A stretch of DNA of 64,000 nt from Anolis carolinensis (Eukaryota). Under the pieces are notes generated by a model. That model saw only the letters and a list, made by a program, of their open reading frames with translations. It ran no database searches and was not told the DNA's origin. Where the stretch lies: contig NW_026943824.1 of NCBI RefSeq assembly GCF_035594765.1, positions 1,126,050-1,190,049 of the forward strand. The letters run 5' to 3'. Position 1 is the first letter of the stretch. Every line of letters begins with the position of its first letter. Made by a program: the position numbers and the translations under genes. This document shows positions 12,801-60,694 of the stretch, piece by piece.

Positions 12801-15800
12801 CATCCAGTCCAACCCCCTGCCAAGAAGCAGGAAATCGCATTCAAAGCACCCCCGACAGATGGCCATCCAGCCTCTGCTTAAAAGCCTCCAAGGAAGGAGC
12901 CTCCACCACAGCCCGGGGGAGAGAGTTCCACTGTCGAACAGCCCTCACAGTGAGGAAGTTCTTCCTGATGTTCAGGTGGAATCTCCTTTCCTGTAGTTTG
13001 AAGCCATTGTTCCGTGTCCTAGTCTGCAGGGCAGCAGAAAACAAGCCTGCTCCCTCCTCCCTATGACTTCCCTTCACGTATTTGTACATGGCTATCATGT
13101 CTCCTCTCAGCCTTCTCTTCTGCAGGCTAAACATGCCCAGCTCTTTAAGCCGCTCCTCATAGGGCTTGTTCTCCAGACCCTTAATCATTTTAGTCGCCCT
13201 CCTCTGGACGCTTTCCAGCTTGTCAACATCTCCCTTCAACTGTGGTGCCCAAAATTGGACACAGTATTCGAGTTGTGGTCTGACCAAGGCAGAATAGAGG
13301 GGGAGCAGGACTTCCCTGGATCTAGACGCTATTCCCCTATTGATGCAGGCCAGAATCCCGTTGGCTTTTTTAGCTGCTGCATCACATTGTTGGCTCATGT
13401 TTAACTTGTTGTCCACGAGGACTCCAAGGTCTTTTTCGCACACACTGCTGTCAAGCCAGGCGTCCCCCATTCTGTATCTTTGATTTCCATTTTTTCTGCC
13501 GAAATGAAGTATCTTGCATTTGTCCCTGTTGAACTTCATTTTGTTAGTTTCGGCCCATCTCTCTAGTTTGTCAAGATCATTTTGAATTCTGCTCCTGTCT
13601 TCTGGAGTGTTAGCTATCCCTCCCAGTTTTGTGTCGTCTGCAAACTTGATGATCGTGCCTTCTAACCCTTCGTCTAAGTCGTTAATAAAGATGTTGAACA
13701 GAACCGGGCCCAGGACGGAGCCCTGCGGCACTCCACTTGTCACTTCTTTCCATGATGAAGATGACGCATTGGTGAGCACCCTTTGGGTTCGTTCGCTTAG
13801 CCAATTGCAGATCCACCTAACCGTAGTTTTGTCTAGCCCACATTTTACTAGTTTATTTGCCAGAAGGTTGTGGGGGACTTTGTCGAAGGCCTTACTGAAA
13901 TCCAGGTAGGCTACATCCACAGCATTCCCTGTATCGACCCAACTCGTAACTCTATCGAAAAAAGAGATCAGATTAGTCTGGCATGACTTGTTTTTGGTAA
14001 ATCCGTGTTGACTATTAGCAATGACCGCATTTGTTTCTAAGTGTTCGCAGACCACTTCCTTGATGATCTTTTCCAGAATCTTGCCTGGTATCGATGTGAG
14101 GCTGACCGGACGGTAATTGTTTGGGTCGTTCTTTTTTCCCTTCTTGAAGATAGGGACCACATTCGCCCTCCTCCAATCTGCTGGGACTTCTCCCGTTCTC
14201 CAAGAACTCTCGAAGATAATTGCTAGTGGTTCTGAAATAACTTCCGCTAATTCCTTCAATACTCTTGGATGTAGCTGATCTGGCCCTGGGGACTTGAATT
14301 CGTTTAGAGAGGCCAGGTGTTCCTGGACAACTTGTTTCCCTATTTGGGGTTGGAGTTCCCCCAATCCTTCGCCCATTCCATGTTGCTGAGGTTGAAGATG
14401 GCTTTCTTTTTGTGAGAAGACCGAGGCAAAGAAGGCATTGAGCAGTTCTGCCTTTTCCCTGTCCCCTGTCGCCATCACCCCATCTTCTCCTTGCAGAGGC
14501 CCTATCGCCTCCTTTTTCTTCCTTTTTCTACCAACGTAAGCAAAAAAGCCTTTTTTGTTGTTTTTTATGTCCCTGGCAAGCCTGAGCTCATTTTGTGCTT
14601 TAGCCTTGCGAACCTTTTCCCTACAGGTGTTGGCTATACGTTTGAATTCTTCTTTGGTGATTTCTCCCCTTTTCCACTTCTTGTGCATGTCACTTTTGAG
14701 CTTTAGCTCAGTTAGAAGTTCTTTGGACATCCATTCTGGCTTCTTTGCACTTGTCTTATTTTTCTTCTTTGTTGGCACTGTTTGCATTTGCGCCTTGAGT
14801 ATTTCACTTTTGAAAAACTCCCATCCATCCTTAACTCCCTTGTTTTTTAATATCGGCGTCCATGGAATGCCGCTCAGTAATTCCTTCATTTTTTGGAAGT
14901 CAGCTCTCTTAAAGTCGAGAATGCGTGTTTGACTTGTCTTAGTTTCAGCATTCCTTTGTATTGCAAACTCCAGGAGCACATGGTCACTTGCCCCTAAGGA
15001 TCCAACCACTTCAACTGTATTGATCAGGTCTTCAACATTTGTTAAGATTAGATCAAGAGTTGCTGATCCTCTTGTTGCCTCTTCTACCTTCTGGACCATA
15101 AAGTTGTCTGCAAGGCAAGTGAGGAATTTGTTGGACTTTGTACTCTTGGATGAGTTTGTTTTCCAGCAGATATCGGAATAATTGAAATCGCCCATGACTA
15201 CTATATCTCTTCTTTGTGCCTGTTTGGTCAGCTGTTGACAGAAGGCTTCATCAAGTCCTTCATCCTGACTCGGAGGTCTGTAGTAGACACCCACAACAAG
15301 ATCTTTTTGAGTCCCGGTTCCCTTGATTCTTATCCAGATGCTTTCTAGCTGGTTTCCCAGATTACAGTCTTGCATTTCTTCTGCAACGTAACTGTTTTTG
15401 ACATATAAAGCTACTCCCCCTCCTCTCCTTTTTGTTCTATTTCTGTGAAAGAGGTTATAGCCCTCAATGGCTACATTCCAGTGATGGGAGTCATCCCACC
15501 AGGTTTCAGTGATGCCTATGACATCGTATGTGTGGTGCTGTGCTAAGAGTTGGAGTTCGTCTTGCTTATTTCCCATGCTCTGAGCGTTGGTGTAAAGACA
15601 TGTAAGCCCCTGTGACCTCCCCTTGAGCTGTTTATTTGGGATTATTGTGCTCTCCGTACTTGGTCCTTGCTGTGTTTGTGCAACCCTCCGTTTAGCCTTT
15701 TGGCGGTTCCCTGTGGTTGTGGGTAATACAGTGTTCGCCAGGCTGTTGTTCCCCTCCCCCAGTGGATCTAGTTTAAAGTGCGCCTGATGAGGTTTGTGAG

Positions 15801-18800
15801 TCTGTGTGCAAAAAGATGTTTTCCTGCTTGTGTGAGATGCACCCCATCACTTGCCAATAGGCCATCCTCCTGGAAGAGTAGACCATGGTCAAGGAAGCCA
15901 AAATGCTCCTCTTGGCACCATTTTCTGAGCCAGTTATTGACCTGTACTATTTTTCCGGCCCTTGTAGAGCCGTGTCCTACAACGGGGAGGAGGGATGAAA
16001 AGATCACATGTACATTATACAGTTTTAGCTTTGTTCCCAGAGCTCGAAAATCATTTGTGATCTTTTGAAAAGTATGCCTAGCGGTGTCATTGGTACCTAC
16101 ATGAATCAACATAAGGTGGGGAGGGTGATGGGGCTTTAGGAGCCTGCTGAGCCTCTGAGTGATATGGTGTATTTTTGCCCCCGGGAGGCAGCATGTTTCT
16201 CGAGCCATCCCATCCGGTCTGGAAATGATGGCTTCCGTTCCTCTAAGGAGGGAGTCACCTACTACCAAGACCTGTTTCCTTTGAGGATTGACCGGGTCCC
16301 TTTTGTGCAAGACAGTGTGTATGTCCCCTGAAGAGTGTTCCTGTTGAAGTGAATCATGCAGGTGTAAAGTGTTGTCCTCCTCCTCAACATCCCCAGTGCA
16401 TTCATCAATGACAATCCATTGAGATACATCCGAGAGCCCATTACTCTCCCAAGGATGTTCCTGTTGCTCCTGGTCTACGATTGGGGATGGAGCATTTGCA
16501 TGATTACATAAGTGTGAATGTGGTGATGCACTGTCCCCGTCCGGGCTATCCCCTGCGCATTGATCAAGGGTGGCCCACTGAGTGGTATCTAAGAAACTGT
16601 GGTCCTCCACAAGATGTGTTTCCTGATTGTATGTTAATGGTGTTAGAATTTCAAATCTGTTGTGTAAATGCAGCTGAGCAGAGGAGTTCTGCGGAGGCTG
16701 CCTGGTCCTGTGTCTCCTTCTATGGGTGACCTCCTTCCAAGCCTGAGGGTTGTCTACCTGTGAGTTGATCTCCCCATAAGGTTCCTGATCATGTTCATGG
16801 TGGTGTTGGTGTGATGCAGGCTGCAGATCTACAGCAGTGTGTTGTGCAGTGTCCAAGAAGAGCTCGAGTGCCTGAATGTCCTTAAGGGTCTTAATACGGT
16901 GCTCGAGCTGTTGGATCCTCTGCTCCATCAGAGTCATCTGTTTGCATTTGGAGCAGATGTAGTTGACTAGTTTTTGTGTGAAAAAGCAGAACATGCCACA
17001 GCTGGTGCATGTGGTGGCAAGTATTTGCTGTTGGTCCATCTCTTGGTGAGTGAAGTGACCGAGGAGGATTGTATGTGTTATGGGCAGAATGCTATCCCCT
17101 TCCTGTGTGTGTATTTTTAAAGTTGTTTTGTTTATTGTATATACTGTAAGAATGTGTTTTGCTGTAGTGGTGGGTGCACACTCTCAGGTTTTTAAGGAAA
17201 TATTAGACAGGCCTTACCTAAACCAAGGAGCAAGCTGCTTTCCTGCTTCCTCTCCTCACCTCTGCGTGAACTCTGGCTCAGAAAGCTTCAACAGGAAGCC
17301 AACACTTTCAATAACAATAGCCTTGCCTCACCTTCCAAACAATGGCAGAACAGCAAGCCTTAATTACAGCTAGCCCACACTCAAGAATCAGCCCAGACTC
17401 AGGTTTTTAAAGGTAAAAGAGTCCAACAAACACAGGTTTTTAAGGCTTTTAAGGCTGTCTAAGAAAAGAGTAGGCAATCTAAGAAAAGAGTGCACACTCT
17501 CAGGTTTTTAAGGAATTATTAGACAGGCCTTACCTAAACCAAGGAGCAAGCTGCTTTCCTGCTTCCTCTCCTCACCTCTGCGTGAACTCTGGCTCAGAAA
17601 GCTTCAACAGGAAGCCAACACTTTCAATAACAATAGCCTTGCCTCACCTTCCAAACAATGGCAGAACAGCAAGCCTTAATTACAGCTAGCCCACACTCAA
17701 GAATCAGCCCAGACTCAGGTTTTTAAAGGTAAAAGAGTCCAACAAACACAGGTTTTTAAGGCTTTTAAGGCTGTCTAAGAAAAGAGTAGGCAATCTAAGA
17801 AAAGAGTGCACACTCTCAGGTTTTTAAGGAATTATTAGACAGGCCTTACCTAAACCAAGGAGCAAGCTGCTTTCCTGCTTCCTCTCCTCACCTCTGCGTG
17901 AACTCTGGCTCAGAAAGCTTCAACAGGAAGCCAACACTTTCAATAACAATAGCCTTGCCTCACCTTCCAAACAATGGCAGAACAGCAAGCCTTAATTACA
18001 GCTAGCCCACACTCAAGAATCAGCCCAGACTCAGGTTTTTAAAGGTAAAAGAGTCCAACAAACACAGGTTTTTAAGGCTTTTAAGGCTGTCTAAGAAAAG
18101 AGTAGGCAATCTAAGAAAAGAGTGCACACTCTCAGGTTTTTAAGGAATTATTAGACAGGCCTTACCTAAACCAAGGAGCAAGCTGCTTTCCTGCTTCCTC
18201 TCCTCACCTCTGCGTGAACTCTGGCTCAGAAAGCTTCAACCGGAAGCCAACACTTTCAATAACAATAGCCTTGCCTCACCTTCCAAACAATGGCAGAACA
18301 GCAAGCCTTAGTTACAGCTAGCCCACACTCAAGAATCAGCCCAGACTCAGGTTTTTAAAGGTAAAAGAGTCCAACAAACACAGGTTTTTAAGGCTTTTAA
18401 GGCTGTCTAAGAAAAGAGTAGGCAATCTAAGAAAAGAGTGCACACTCTCAGGTTTTTAAGGAATTATTAGACAGGCCTTACCTAAACCAAGGAGCAAGCT
18501 GCTTTCCTGCTTCCTCTCCTCACCTCTGCGTGAACTCTGGCTCAGAAAGCTTCAACAGGAAGCCAACACTTTCAATAACAATAGCCTTGCCTCACCTTCC
18601 AAACAATGGCAGAACAGCAAGCCTTAATTACAGCTAGCCCACACTCAAGAATCAGCCCAGACTCAGGTTTTTAAAGGTAAAAGAGTCCAACAAACACAGG
18701 TTTTTAAGGCTTTTAAGGCTGTCTAAGAAAAGAGTAGGCAATCTAAGAAAAGAGTGCACACTCTCAGGTTTTTAAGGAATTATTAGACAGGCCTTACCTA

Positions 18801-20134
18801 AACCAAGGAGCAAGCTGCTTTCCTGCTTCCTCTCCTCACCTCTGCGTGAACTCTGGCTCAGAAAGCTTCAACAGGAAGCCAACACTTTCAATAACAATAG
18901 CCTTGCCTCACCTTCCAAACAATGGCAGAACAGCAAGCCTTAATTACAGCTAGCCCACACTCAAGAATCAGCCCAGACTCAGGTTTTTAAAGGTAAAAGA
19001 GTCCAACAAACACAGGTTTTTAAGGCTTTTAAGGCTGTCTAAGAAAAGAGTAGGCAATCTAAGAAAAGAGTGCACACTCTCAGGTTTTTAAGGAATTATT
19101 AGACAGGCCTTACCTAAACCAAGGAGCAAGCTGCTTTCCTGCTTCCTCTCCTCACCTCTGTGTGAACTCTGGCTCAGAAAGCTTCAACAGGAAGCCAACA
19201 CTTTCAATAACAATAGCCTTGCCTCACCTTCCAAACAATGGCAGAACAGCAAGCCTTAATTACAGCTAGCCCACACTCAAGAATCAGCCCAGACTCAGGT
19301 TTTTAAAGGTAAAAGAGTCCAACAAACACAGGTTTTTAAGGCTTTTAAGGCTGTCTAAGAAAAGAGTAGGCAATCTAAGAAAAGAGTGCACACTCTCAGG
19401 TTTTTAAGGAATTATTAGACAGGCCTTACCTAAACCAAGGAGCAAGCTGCTTTCCTGCTTCCTCTCCTCACCTCTGCGTGAACTCTGGCTCAGAAAGCTT
19501 CAACAGGAAGCCAACACTTTCAATAACAATAGCCTTGCCTCACCTTCCAAACAATGGCAGAACAGCAAGCCTTAATTACAGCTAGCCCACACTCAAGAAT
19601 CAGCCCAGACTCAGGTTTTTAAAGGTAAAAGAGTCCAACAAACACAGGTTTTTAAGGCTTTTAAGGCTGTCTAAGAAAAGAGTAGGCAATCTAAGAAAAG
19701 AGTGCACACTCTCAGGTTTTTAAGGAATTATTAGACAGGCCTTACCTAAACCAAGGAGCAAGCTGCTTTCCTGCTTCCTCTCCTCACCTCTGCGTGAACT
19801 CTGGCTCAGAAAGCTTTAGAGCTGCTTTAAAACTACTTAAAATGTATATTTGGGGTCCAAGCTGTTATCATTTAGTTGTCGCATAGAACCCATCAACTCC
19901 AGGAATTTAATGAATAACAACCTATTTCGCACATTTAACCTTTTTAACATTTCCTACATACAACCTTCTAGATTTCTTTTAATTGGTTTGAGAAAGTAAA
20001 CAAAAATTGTCTCAAACAACCCCTTTACGTTCAAGGTTGCCCTCTATATACAAGAACATCTCCAAAGGTAGGCGGCTTAAACTGACTGGTTTGTTTTGGT
20101 TCTAGAGCACGACCGCTGGAGGAAGTATCACTGA
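9877..20134 (+). CDS. ATP5MF: ATP synthase membrane subunit f, 89 aa; exons 9877-9892, 11736-11843, 12373-12489, 20106-20134
   Basis: GT-AG splicing gives [95 protein letters not shown] at 20250-20255. Synteny with CPSF4/PTCD1 fits. Confidence 0.95.
10117..10210. mobile_element. Short foldback MITE core (long perfect inverted repeat)
   Basis: CCCTCCAGGTGTTCTGGACTCCAACTCCCACAATTCCTAACAGC followed by its exact reverse complement. Relatives near 34701, 35336, 41590, 45565, 54480, 56505, 57897. Confidence 0.75.
10225..10745. mobile_element. Penelope-like element (PLE) terminal-repeat fragments in both orientations; continues 11428-11690
   Basis: CTGACGTTTCGCCTGCATCTGTGG...CATCCTCAGAGG (minus strand) and downstream sequence are shared with the GIY-YIG-linked copy at 38548-39820. 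Confidence 0.65.
11095..11398. mobile_element. Tc1/mariner-type MITE
   Basis: TIR CAGTAGAGTCTC(A/G)CTTA(T/G)CCAA flanked by TA. Further copies at 22601-22888, 36207-36529, 38712-39201, 51058-52372, 51568-51872, 55038-55345, 56415-56500. Confidence 0.85.
12841..15576 (-). CDS. CR1 ORF2: APE endonuclease + reverse transcriptase (911 aa from first ATG; frame is open from 15846)
   Basis: APE motifs GITETWW, YRPP, MGDFN, LDLIL, SDH; RT motifs [34 protein letters not shown]; CR1 C-terminus FKQRLD. No stops. Confidence 0.96.
15768..17039 (-). CDS. CR1 ORF1: N-terminal C4 zinc finger + coiled coil, C-terminal SGNH/GDSL esterase domain, 423 aa
   Basis: CTSC-x14-CSKC followed by heptad repeats; SGNH blocks [25 protein letters not shown]. 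Confidence 0.93.
17174..19816 (-). repeat. CR1 5'UTR tandem monomer array: 8 x 316 bp + 115 bp
   Basis: GTGCACACTCTCAGG recurs at 17174, 17490, 17806, 18122, 18438, 18754, 19070, 19386, 19702. Only a handful of substitutions. Confidence 0.96.

Positions 20135-47161: not shown

Positions 47162-58159
<10,998 letters not shown>

Positions 58160-59388: not shown

Positions 59389-59390
<2 letters not shown>
58275..59390 (-). repeat. Eight tandem copies of an R4/Dong-like 3' end separated by variable (TAA)n
   Basis: TGACACAGCAAACAAGATAGATATGCTGGATTTC...CACTTCCCAAGTGTCTAGGACTGTGTGATGTA x8. The last unit extends into coding GSARIIRKY. Confidence 0.85.
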
Positions 59391-59437
<47 letters not shown>

Positions 59438-59444
59438 TATTATA

Positions 59445-59535
59445 AAGGCTGGGTGGCCATCTGTTGGGGGTGCTTTGATTGCCTTTTTTCTGGATGGCAG
59501 AAGCAGGTTGGACCGGATGACCCCAGGGTTGCTCC

Positions 59536-59578
<43 letters not shown>

Positions 59579-59803
59579 TACAAAGGCTGGGTGGTTATCT
59601 GTTGGGGCTGCTTCGATTGTGCATTTCCTGGATGGCGGGAGTTTGGACTGGATGACCCCAGGGATGTGCCTATTAATACTATTATTAATTATTATTATTA
59701 ATTAAGGCTGGGTGGCCATCTATTGGGGGTGCTTTGATTGTGCCTTTCCTGCATGGCAGAAGGGGGTTGGACCGGATGACCCCAGGGTTGCCCCTATTAA
59801 TAC

Positions 59804-59846
<43 letters not shown>

Positions 59847-60067
59847 TACAAAGCTGGGTGGCCATCTGTTGGCAATGCTTTTATTGTGCTTTTCCTGGAT
59901 GGCAGAAGAGGGTTGGACTGGATGACCCCGGGGTTCTTCCTATTTATCTTATTAATTGTTATTATTATTATTCATTACAAAGGCTGGGTGGCCATCTGTT
60001 TCGATTGTGCTTTTCCTGGATGACAGGAGTTTGGACTGGATGACCCCAGGGTTGTGCCTATTAATAC

Positions 60068-60107
<40 letters not shown>

Positions 60108-60214
60108 TAAGGCTGGGTGGCCATTTGTTGAGGTTGCTTTGATTGTGCCTTTCCTGGGTGGCAGAAGGAGATTGGACCGGATGACTCCAGGGTTGCTCCT
60201 ATTAATACTACTAC

Positions 60215-60248
<34 letters not shown>

Positions 60249-60253
60249 TATTA
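59445..60253 (+). repeat. Six tandem diverged CR1-like 3' ends separated by (TTA)n
   Basis: AGGCTGGGTGGCCATCTGTTGGGG.TGCTTTGA...GGTTGGAC.GGATG resembles the end of CR1 ORF2 and 3'UTR (50707-50780). Confidence 0.75.
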
Positions 60254-60694
60254 CAAAGTTCCAAAATGGATCACAACTCCCAGCATTCTCTCCAATGGAG
60301 GGCTAACGAAGGGCTGCATATCCTCGGAGCCAAATCTCCGTCTCAATTAGAACAGTCATTACAAGGTTCTTTTCTAACCCAACTTCCATGCATTTAGCGG
60401 GTCATCTTTATTATCTTTGGTATAAACCCCACTAATGCAAACACATGATCAGAGTATGTCTTAATTAAGAGTTGGAACTGGCTGCGGGGAAATGCATGAA
60501 TGAAAGGAGCCCTTTGAGGCCGGATTTCTCGCCAAAGGTTATCTGTCAGTGGCGCTTTGTGTCTCCCCAAATCCAAGTTGGGAGACAGAAGAGTCATTAT
60601 AATATGTGCTTTTTTATGAAACGCATTTTAGTATCGTGATATATTTTGAGTAGGGGTGTGCAAAAAGGCTGAAATTATTACTACTGTTGTTGTC

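Follow-up and report, generated by a model that had tools for sequence, protein, structure and literature searches.

How ORF2 is translated in bicistronic LINEs is an old question, which also concerns CR1, the retrotransposon that dominates in birds, crocodilians, turtles and many squamates. Efficient classical -1 frameshifting needs a downstream stem-loop or pseudoknot, beginning 5-9 nt past the heptamer, as a stimulator. The slip site between ORF1a and ORF1b of coronaviruses and arteriviruses is U_UUA_AAC, with G_UUA_AAC in equine arteritis virus. In the luteovirus BYDV and the dianthovirus RCNMV, a stop codon directly follows the shifty heptamer. The nsp2TF site of PRRSV is reportedly stimulated by a linear, protein-bound C-rich motif located about 10 nt downstream. 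Among non-LTR elements, a comprehensive 2016 review of recoding features HeT-A and TART only, and reviews of the accepted examples SART1 and L1 point to reinitiation.

The window analysed here, a stretch of 64,000 nt from Anolis carolinensis, contains a CR1 element, the ORF1-ORF2 junction of which carries exactly the coronavirus/arterivirus heptamer in matching phase, and in both cases the polymerase is encoded in the frame that follows. The lone CR1 variant (G_UUA_AAC, lineage L088) equals the arterivirus site. In contrast to the viral sites, which feature a pseudoknot 5-7 nt downstream, CR1 has no predicted stable structure but a G-run 10 nt on, its 0-frame stop adjoins the heptamer, and the host element is a vertebrate LINE rather than an RNA virus. 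The adjoining 0-frame stop is shared with BYDV and RCNMV; however, these viruses use an adjacent stem-loop, and BYDV also a long-distance 3' partner, whereas no partner of the CR1 G-run was found in the element. As at the PRRSV nsp2TF site, a conserved, unstructured homopurine/homopyrimidine motif occurs at about 10 nt instead of a pseudoknot, although the CR1 motif is G-rich, has no known binding protein and would accompany a -1 shift only. The proposed CR1 strategy resembles retroviral and LTR-retrotransposon gag-pol or gag-pro-pol expression, in that a nucleic-acid-associated first protein would be made in excess and the enzyme would be a C-terminal extension produced by occasional slippage at X_XXY_YYZ. 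CR1, however, is a non-LTR element without a protease, and we know of no route by which the fusion would be cleaved. In SART1 and L1, as would be the case in CR1, ORF2 is translated from a bicistronic LINE RNA by ribosomes that previously translated ORF1. Stop and start overlap in SART1, with an AUG, and a spacer separates the ORFs of L1, whereas CR1 has a conserved putative slip site of canonical type and no conserved start codon.

The CR1 element and its ORF1-ORF2 junction

The element is an intact, young CR1 LINE (Table 1). The features of the CR1 clade, namely an ORF1 esterase, APE and RT domains in ORF2 (Pfam) and a 3' octamer microsatellite instead of poly(A), are all present, and named relatives come from Anolis, turtles, birds and crocodilians. 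The ORF1 protein shares 96% identity with a protein cluster of A. carolinensis and matches PDB 4c1b, the esterase encoded by ORF1 of a zebrafish LINE; an exact look-up of the window ORF1 matched no record.

Table 1 Parts of the CR1 element in the window and of its ORF1-ORF2 junction.
Feature	Positions	Strand	Evidence or remark
Full-length CR1 LINE: 5' monomer array, ORF1, ORF2, 3'UTR, (ATTCTATG)n tail	12752..19816	-	
5'UTR: 316-bp monomers in tandem, mutually >99% identical	17174..19816	-	Self-BLAST matches offset by 316 bp
ORF1, 423 aa: N-terminal Cys motif and SGNH/GDSL esterase domain	15768..17039	-	PF13472, E 2.4e-11
Candidate slippery heptamer U_UUA_AAC in ORF1 phase (UUA in P site, AAC in A site)	15771..15777	-	
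ORF1 stop TAG, adjoining the heptamer; C+TA = Leu in -1 frame	15768..15770	-	
7-nt spacer; sequence varies, length near-constant among lineages	15761..15767	-	
Conserved G-run GGGGGAGGGG, candidate stimulator; 10 nt past heptamer, 7 nt past stop	15751..15760	-	
CTG in ORF2 frame; possible near-cognate start if ORF2 is reinitiated	15760..15762	-	
ORF2 frame (1001 sense codons and stop), in the -1 frame of ORF1; read from the heptamer on if ribosomes slip there	12841..15846	-	
First conserved endonuclease motif; upstream of first ATG	15577..15609	-	Common to all relatives
First in-frame ATG of ORF2 frame: conserved Met of S-M-G-N-K, within endonuclease domain	15574..15576	-	
Apurinic-type endonuclease domain	14980..15564	-	PF03372, E 1.7e-15, residues 95-289
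Reverse transcriptase domain	13492..14136	-	PF00078, E 1.7e-34, residues 571-785

ORF1 ends in ACT TTA AAC TAG on the minus strand, with T TTA AAC in the X_XXY_YYZ phase of the frame and the stop codon directly behind it. Re-reading of the sequence confirmed every detail of this arrangement as described in the first-pass annotation, which had also placed ORF2 in the -1 frame, open from 15846 and overlapping ORF1 by about 79 nt. The APE and RT domains are indeed encoded in the -1 frame, which follows a TGA at 15849-15847, remains open down to the stop at 12843-12841 and overlaps ORF1 by 79 nt. The accompanying claim, that no in-frame ATG precedes 15576 and that an endonuclease motif lies upstream of it, is borne out by both the frame and the Pfam match. 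No AUG is found before the catalytic YTNAQS motif, and the first ATG occurs just past the conserved endonuclease motif at 15609-15577. The Exo_endo_phos match begins at residue 95 and at profile position 17, which places the N-terminal part of the domain, with its catalytic Asn motif, ahead of this ATG.

We estimate that a phased heptamer would occur by chance within the 79-nt overlap of one element in roughly 5% of cases, and the single window copy is therefore weak evidence; retention of the heptamer across lineages, described below, is far beyond chance. The last four residues of ORF1, RTLN, fall outside the esterase region aligning to the solved structure, which fits a constraint at the RNA rather than at the protein level. 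Contigs from four studies, which say nothing on expression, stood in for other Anolis copies. No common variant, indel or recurrent junction was seen at 15730-15825 in these Anolis-family contigs, and none of the common variants listed for 15577-15767 (from the stop to the first ATG, inspected by hand) creates an ATG.

Conservation of heptamer, adjacent stop and G-run across tetrapod CR1

Conservation was assessed in sets of 12-15 lineages sharing <70-80% nucleotide identity, with two more added for the 13/13 counts (13 to 17 lineages overall). The penultimate Leu of ORF1 is encoded by TTA in 12/12 to 14/14 lineages and the last Asn by AAC in 12/12 to 15/15; codon use is fully scrambled at ten other conserved Leu columns (12-15 lineages). 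Both codons are found in 13/13 independent lineages, compared with backgrounds of 8% for TTA and 44% for AAC. T precedes the Leu codon in 12/13 lineages, compared with a background of 23%, and the residue at this position varies (Ala, Thr, Ser, Phe); L088 is the sole exception. The heptamer is kept beyond the amino-acid requirement, as expected at synonymous sites of a -1 frameshift signal. Lack of such conservation had been named in advance as grounds for abandoning the frameshift idea, and the counts for TTA, AAC and T went the other way.

In each of the 16 lineages compared, the ORF1 stop (TAG, TGA or TAA) adjoins the heptamer. The G-rich tract noticed earlier downstream of the junction is also conserved at near-fixed spacing: the GGGGG run lies about 10 nt past the heptamer (G occupies offsets 17-21 in 14-16 of 16 lineages) and persists in a different codon phase in L086 and L091. 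The heptamer motif is found in Zootoca, a poison frog, a penguin, Chrysemys, Pelodiscus, Alligator mississippiensis and Alligator sinensis, in a Gopherus lineage with just 29% ORF1 identity, and in about 65 metagenome-borne copies, which were retrieved by patterns located elsewhere in ORF1. The C-terminal residues LN are present in 88/139 ORF1-like proteins.

Between heptamer and endonuclease motif, the -1 frame runs open for 37-95 codons in 38 loci. An in-frame Met is wholly absent from this interval in the window, in the frog, in L088 and in one large bird-type subfamily; elsewhere, in-frame AUGs are sporadic, and whole lineages lack one before the catalytic motif. ORF2 of the window, in the -1 frame, is free of stops from the putative slip site onward and lacks a usable start codon. 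Bird-type copies carry a -1-frame stop 6 nt upstream of the heptamer, and the overlap consequently holds little besides the slip site. The third-position excess in the bird-type linker past the heptamer is weak (0.17/0.17/0.23 in a codon-position test); maintenance of the ORF was therefore used as coding evidence instead of this test.

A sea cucumber relative (L087), featuring an esterase and CCHC ORF1, no heptamer and ORF2 in frame 0, is not comparable and marks a limit of heptamer conservation. In one A. mississippiensis copy (L084), the endonuclease lies in frame 0, which could suggest readthrough. This reading was rejected because a second alligator copy (L090) has the endonuclease in the -1 frame, and the frame of L084 probably reflects a copy-specific indel.

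Probable frameshifting and other possible routes to ORF2

We favour, with a probability of roughly 0.7, the interpretation already put forward in the first-pass annotation, in which a programmed -1 frameshift at U_UUA_AAC would make an ORF1-ORF2 fusion of about 1399 aa. Synonymous conservation and an open -1 frame without AUG in several lineages argue for it. A fraction of the ribosomes translating ORF1 would slip back one base at the heptamer, which comprises the last two ORF1 sense codons, with tRNA-Leu re-pairing from UUA to UUU and tRNA-Asn from AAC to AAA. Slipped ribosomes would read CUA (Leu) over the ORF1 stop, enter the endonuclease/reverse-transcriptase frame and produce the fusion, while non-slipping ribosomes would terminate and release ORF1p. 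The expected outcome is a high ratio of ORF1p to ORF2, as for retroviral gag and gag-pol. The anatomy, the conservation of heptamer, stop and G-run across tetrapod CR1 lineages and the absence of an AUG were observed directly; slippage itself, its efficiency and any stimulation by the G-run are inferred.

Reinitiation coupled to termination, or AUG-independent initiation, would instead yield ORF2p as a separate protein. Some post-termination ribosomes, perhaps held by the G-run, would stay on the RNA and restart a few codons on in the -1 frame, at a near-cognate or arbitrary codon (here CUG, 15762-15760). Reviews accept this model for two-ORF LINEs, with SART1 and L1 as examples, and a stop codon always placed directly at the junction would also suit it. 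Three squamate lineages carry ATG (L002), GTG (L001) and CTG (the window) at one and the same place just before the G-run, and in-frame ATGs occur 5-8 nt past the stop in L014, L059, L022 and L002. The ORF overlap of rodent LINE-1 was reportedly once read as frameshifting and later ascribed to reinitiation, and human L1 ORF2 is said to be able to start without AUG. We also count against frameshifting that single-sequence folds revealed no stable downstream stimulator, that no stretch able to pair with the G-run turned up in the element, and that the linker past the heptamer shows just a weak third-position excess. Reinitiation, however, gives no reason for the synonymous fixation of TTA, AAC and the preceding T across lineages. 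Moreover, a near-cognate codon does not consistently precede the G-run (AAG, TGG, CAT, GAG or TCG stands there in other lineages), and entire lineages lack any AUG upstream of the catalytic motif. An AUG overlapping the stop or located a few nt from it, as in SART1 and caliciviruses, is found in a minority of lineages only and not in the window, where the CTG sits 6 nt past the stop (8 nt past its first base). We consider a separately initiated ORF2p, the main alternative, unlikely.

Far less probable still is that no recoding occurs, the heptamer being kept by a protein-level or RNA-binding constraint at the end of ORF1 and ORF2 being expressed from the internal Met (15576), by splicing or from an internal promoter. 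The C-terminal ...RRALN is conserved as protein too, and TTTAAA resembles a TATA-like box, but a start at 15576 would remove YTNAQS with the catalytic Asn, and synonymous codons are fixed at these three junction codons only. The contigs from four studies, with no recurrent junction or indel at the site, and the 38 loci with a -1 frame open from the heptamer onward likewise speak against it. Transcriptional slippage was ruled out on sequence, because the runs are only T3 and A3.

No statement on frameshifting in CR1 was found in the searchable literature, although an earlier remark in Haas 1997, Kajikawa 1997, Kapitonov and Jurka 2003 or Novick 2009 is possible. If the frameshift is real, a major LINE clade uses a retrovirus-like gag-pol strategy, and the CR1 reverse transcriptase acts as an esterase-bearing ORF1-ORF2 fusion. 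In that case, the endonuclease is cut short in ORF2 models that start from the first AUG, which also bears on how many CR1 copies are counted as "intact".

The G-run and downstream RNA structure

Inspection by eye had previously yielded no convincing fold, and computed folds agree. Single-sequence folds of the 80-120 nt past the heptamer revealed no consistent or significant structure among 14 lineages; the z-score was -0.2 for the window and close to 0 for most lineages. A search of Rfam returned no match, and no C-rich partner for the G-run was found on the sense strand of the element. The linker is too divergent among lineages for covariation analysis.

It is conceivable, although doubtful, that the linear GGGGG(A)GGGG motif, placed at a fixed distance of about 10 nt from U_UUA_AAC, is a new kind of eukaryotic frameshift stimulator. 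Such a motif might act without a pseudoknot, by binding either a host protein that recognizes G-tracts or the element's own zinc-finger ORF1p, by pairing with rRNA or by forming a G-quadruplex, and the module would have been kept since before the frog-amniote split. If ORF1p were the factor recognizing the G-run, ORF2 synthesis would be coupled to the ORF1p already made. Heptamer, stop, 7 nt and G-run together form a short, directly testable cassette, with which frameshifting that lacks an evident pseudoknot could be studied in vertebrate cells. In the single-sequence folds, the G-run was paired in only two lineages, L004 (z -4.7) and L086 (z -1.7).

Organization of the CR1 element and its ORF1/ORF2 junction

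The minus-strand element at 12752-19816 features ORF1, ORF2, an array of 316-bp monomers and a (ATTCTATG)n 3' end, located downstream of ORF2 at about 12752, and is therefore a full-length CR1 LINE, apparently intact. The window sequence contains no N. ORF1 encodes an SGNH/GDSL esterase domain preceded by an N-terminal Cys motif, and shares 96% identity with a cluster comprising 71 Anolis carolinensis proteins. The tandem monomers of the 5'UTR are reminiscent of mouse L1 monomer promoters.

Features of the CR1 element (window coordinates)
Feature	Position	Strand	Description
5'UTR monomer array	17174-19816	minus	about eight tandem 316-bp monomers, >99% identical to one another
ORF1	15768-17039	minus	423 aa; last codons ...CGC ACT TTA AAC TAG
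Heptamer T TTA AAC	15777-15771	minus	X_XXY_YYZ in ORF1 phase, stop immediately 3'
G-run	15760-15751	minus	GGGGGAGGGG
ORF2 frame	15846 to 12841	minus	one base back relative to ORF1; open, 1001 codons

The ORF2 frame encodes an apurinic-type endonuclease (PF03372, E 1.7e-15), with the Pfam match starting no earlier than profile position 17, as well as a reverse transcriptase (PF00078, E 1.7e-34). The first ATG of this frame, at 15576, corresponds to the Met of S-M-G-N-K and lies 3' of the first conserved endonuclease motif, so that initiation at this codon would yield a protein without the N-terminal catalytic motif. The main points of the first-pass annotation, which had proposed a -1 frameshift between the two ORFs, are all recovered: a phased heptamer directly before the ORF1 stop, a -1 ORF2 frame open from 15846, a truncated endonuclease upon AUG initiation and a G-rich tract downstream.

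Contigs from four runs of four studies, which may be RNA or DNA and so have no bearing on expression, were aligned over 15300-16300. Within 15730-15825, they revealed no variant at a frequency of at least 10%, no indel and no recurrent junction. Common variants within the codons of YTNAQS, the endonuclease motif carrying the catalytic Asn, leave the ORF2-frame residues unchanged. A check by hand of the common variants listed for the linker, from the stop to the first ATG, showed none that creates an ATG.

Sequence constraint at the heptamer and the G-run

Related junctions were obtained by exact-protein look-up from Zootoca vivipara (L001), a metagenome contig (L002), Dendrobates (L083), Alligator mississippiensis (L084), penguin (L085), Chrysemys (L086), sea cucumber (L087), an ENA contig (L088), Pelodiscus (L089), Alligator sinensis (L090) and a very divergent Gopherus (L091). 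A single metagenome scan, using search patterns placed mid-esterase and away from its end, provided 80 further loci. These come mostly from one sample, clearly DNA of a vertebrate host, and have junctions like that of the penguin element. Of roughly 75 junctions that could be read, about 65 have GCT TTA AAC, stop, 7 nt, GGGGGAAGGGG. Many of the compared copies are old and decayed, and all were compared as they stand. Among 139 ORF1-like proteins, 88 terminate in ...LN, and the others are mostly gene models that are chimeric or truncated. In the sea cucumber relative, ORF1 has a different architecture and the heptamer is absent. As far as sampled, the heptamer module is a feature of tetrapod CR1s, not of all esterase-bearing LINEs.

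Lineages were grouped by nucleotide identity in the ORF1 C-terminal domain into sets of <80% (15 lineages) and <70% (12 lineages). The penultimate Leu of ORF1 is TTA in 14/14 and 12/12 cases, respectively; for AAC at the last Asn, the counts are 15/15 and 12/12. In the same sets, ten other conserved Leu columns feature four to five different codons apiece, and codon choice is equally scrambled at conserved columns of Gly, Ala, Pro, Arg and Asn. The lineages are not independent in the strict sense; saturation is evidenced by the scrambling at all other synonymous sites. A background derived from the same sequences was used for 13 lineages of <70% identity, including L091. Here, TTA (13/13) compares with 8% of Leu codons, AAC (13/13) with 44% of Asn codons, and a T preceding the Leu codon (12/13) with 23% at fourfold sites. 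This T is retained although the residue that it belongs to varies (Ala, Thr, Ser or Phe). The single exception reads G_UUA_AAC, the working slip site of equine arteritis virus. Conservation beyond codon constraint, the test named in the first-pass annotation, holds for the heptamer, which is therefore selected as RNA, in the phase required for tandem slippage.

The zebrafish LINE ORF1 esterase structure (PDB 4c1b) aligns through residue 165 of the 169-residue domain. The final four ORF1 residues, RTLN, are outside the aligned fold, consistent with a constraint that goes beyond protein structure. In Gopherus flavomarginatus (L091:2385-2440), the very divergent esterase ORF1 ends CAG TTT TTA AAC TAG, and a second slippery pattern, U_UUU_UUA, overlaps U_UUA_AAC; no endonuclease was found within 600 nt in this copy.

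The layout across 16 lineages is RGG GCT TTA AAC, TRR, 7 variable nucleotides, GGGGG, A/T, (A)GGGG, with the G-run starting 10 nt past the heptamer (range 8-12). The Gly codon within the G-run is GGG in 16/16 lineages, versus a 31% background. The G-run is retained in the Chrysemys and Gopherus copies despite a different codon phase, which points to a role at the RNA level.

Over the 80-120 nt after the heptamer, single-sequence folds do not exceed shuffled sequences in stability, in the window (z -0.2 and -0.85) as in most lineages. The first-pass annotation had found no convincing pseudoknot by eye. The G-run forms a hairpin 5' arm only in metagenome locus L004 (z -4.7) and in L086 (z -1.7), and only L004 has a clearly stable structure after the heptamer. 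In L004 (about 2000-2100, contig Ga0065711_1002904), which represents a CR1 subfamily, the G-run GGGAUGGG is matched perfectly over 8 bp by CCCAUCCC, about 25 nt 3', and a second strong hairpin follows (z -4.7). The sense strand of the element carries no C-rich complement of the G-run, and Rfam yields no match.

Routes to ORF2 translation

Judging from these comparisons, we consider it probable (about 0.7) that CR1 ORF2 is made by -1 frameshifting at U_UUA_AAC. Ribosomes would undergo tandem -1 slippage on the heptamer at the end of ORF1, decode C-UA(G) as Leu and proceed into ORF2, yielding a 1399-aa ORF1-ORF2 fusion. Known frameshift sites provide precedents for all three conserved features: the heptamer, a stop right after it and an element about 10 nt downstream. 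Since LINEs require only very small amounts of ORF2 product, weak stimulation of the site could suffice.

The -1 frame is stop-free from the heptamer to the Y-T-N-A motif in 38 loci, over 37 to 95 codons, and in-frame Met residues are sporadic in this stretch. Four loci have one 5-8 nt past the ORF1 stop, and one bird-type subfamily has one at codon 22; none is present between the heptamer and Y-T-N-A in the window, the frog, L088 (the G_UUA_AAC lineage) or the other large bird-type subfamily. Bird-type copies feature a -1-frame stop 6 nt 5' of the heptamer, and their ORF overlap has little content besides the slip site. The endonuclease is in frame 0 in the A. mississippiensis copy, probably because of a copy-specific indel, and in the -1 frame in a second alligator copy (L090).

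The main rival, a termination-coupled, AUG-independent restart just past the ORF1 stop, which we regard as unlikely, would suit both the invariant stop position and the ATG, GTG or CTG found at one shared place in three squamate lineages, but most other lineages lack a near-cognate codon there, and the fixed synonymous positions of the heptamer would be left unexplained. For SART1 and L1, reinitiation is the standard model, and LINE reviews assign their ORF2 to it. Routes other than frameshifting or restart appear very improbable. Among non-LTR elements, a 2016 recoding review names only HeT-A and TART. LINE reviews and recent CR1 surveys mention neither frameshifting nor ORF overlap in CR1; early CR1 papers are outside this scope and may hold an earlier remark.

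Other CR1-related sequences in the window

The same CR1 family is represented at 49908-50828 on the plus strand by a 3' fragment (about 0.9 kb, 93% identity to the full-length copy). Arrays at 55601-56333 and 59390-60258 have periods of 121-169 bp, in which a unit of roughly 100 nt precedes an (ATT)n/(TAT)n microsatellite. Similarity of the units to the last bases of CR1 ORF2 and the 3'UTR (GGTTGGACTGGATG... motif) is 74-81%, and the arrays resemble either a series of very short 3' fragments or a SINE or satellite that arose from the CR1 tail. The 1-6000 region contains no ORF of at least 180 aa. Its plus strand is strongly AT-skewed (-0.27 to -0.29), in a manner similar to the CR1 ORF2 region, and a decayed, A-rich minus-strand LINE may be present here.
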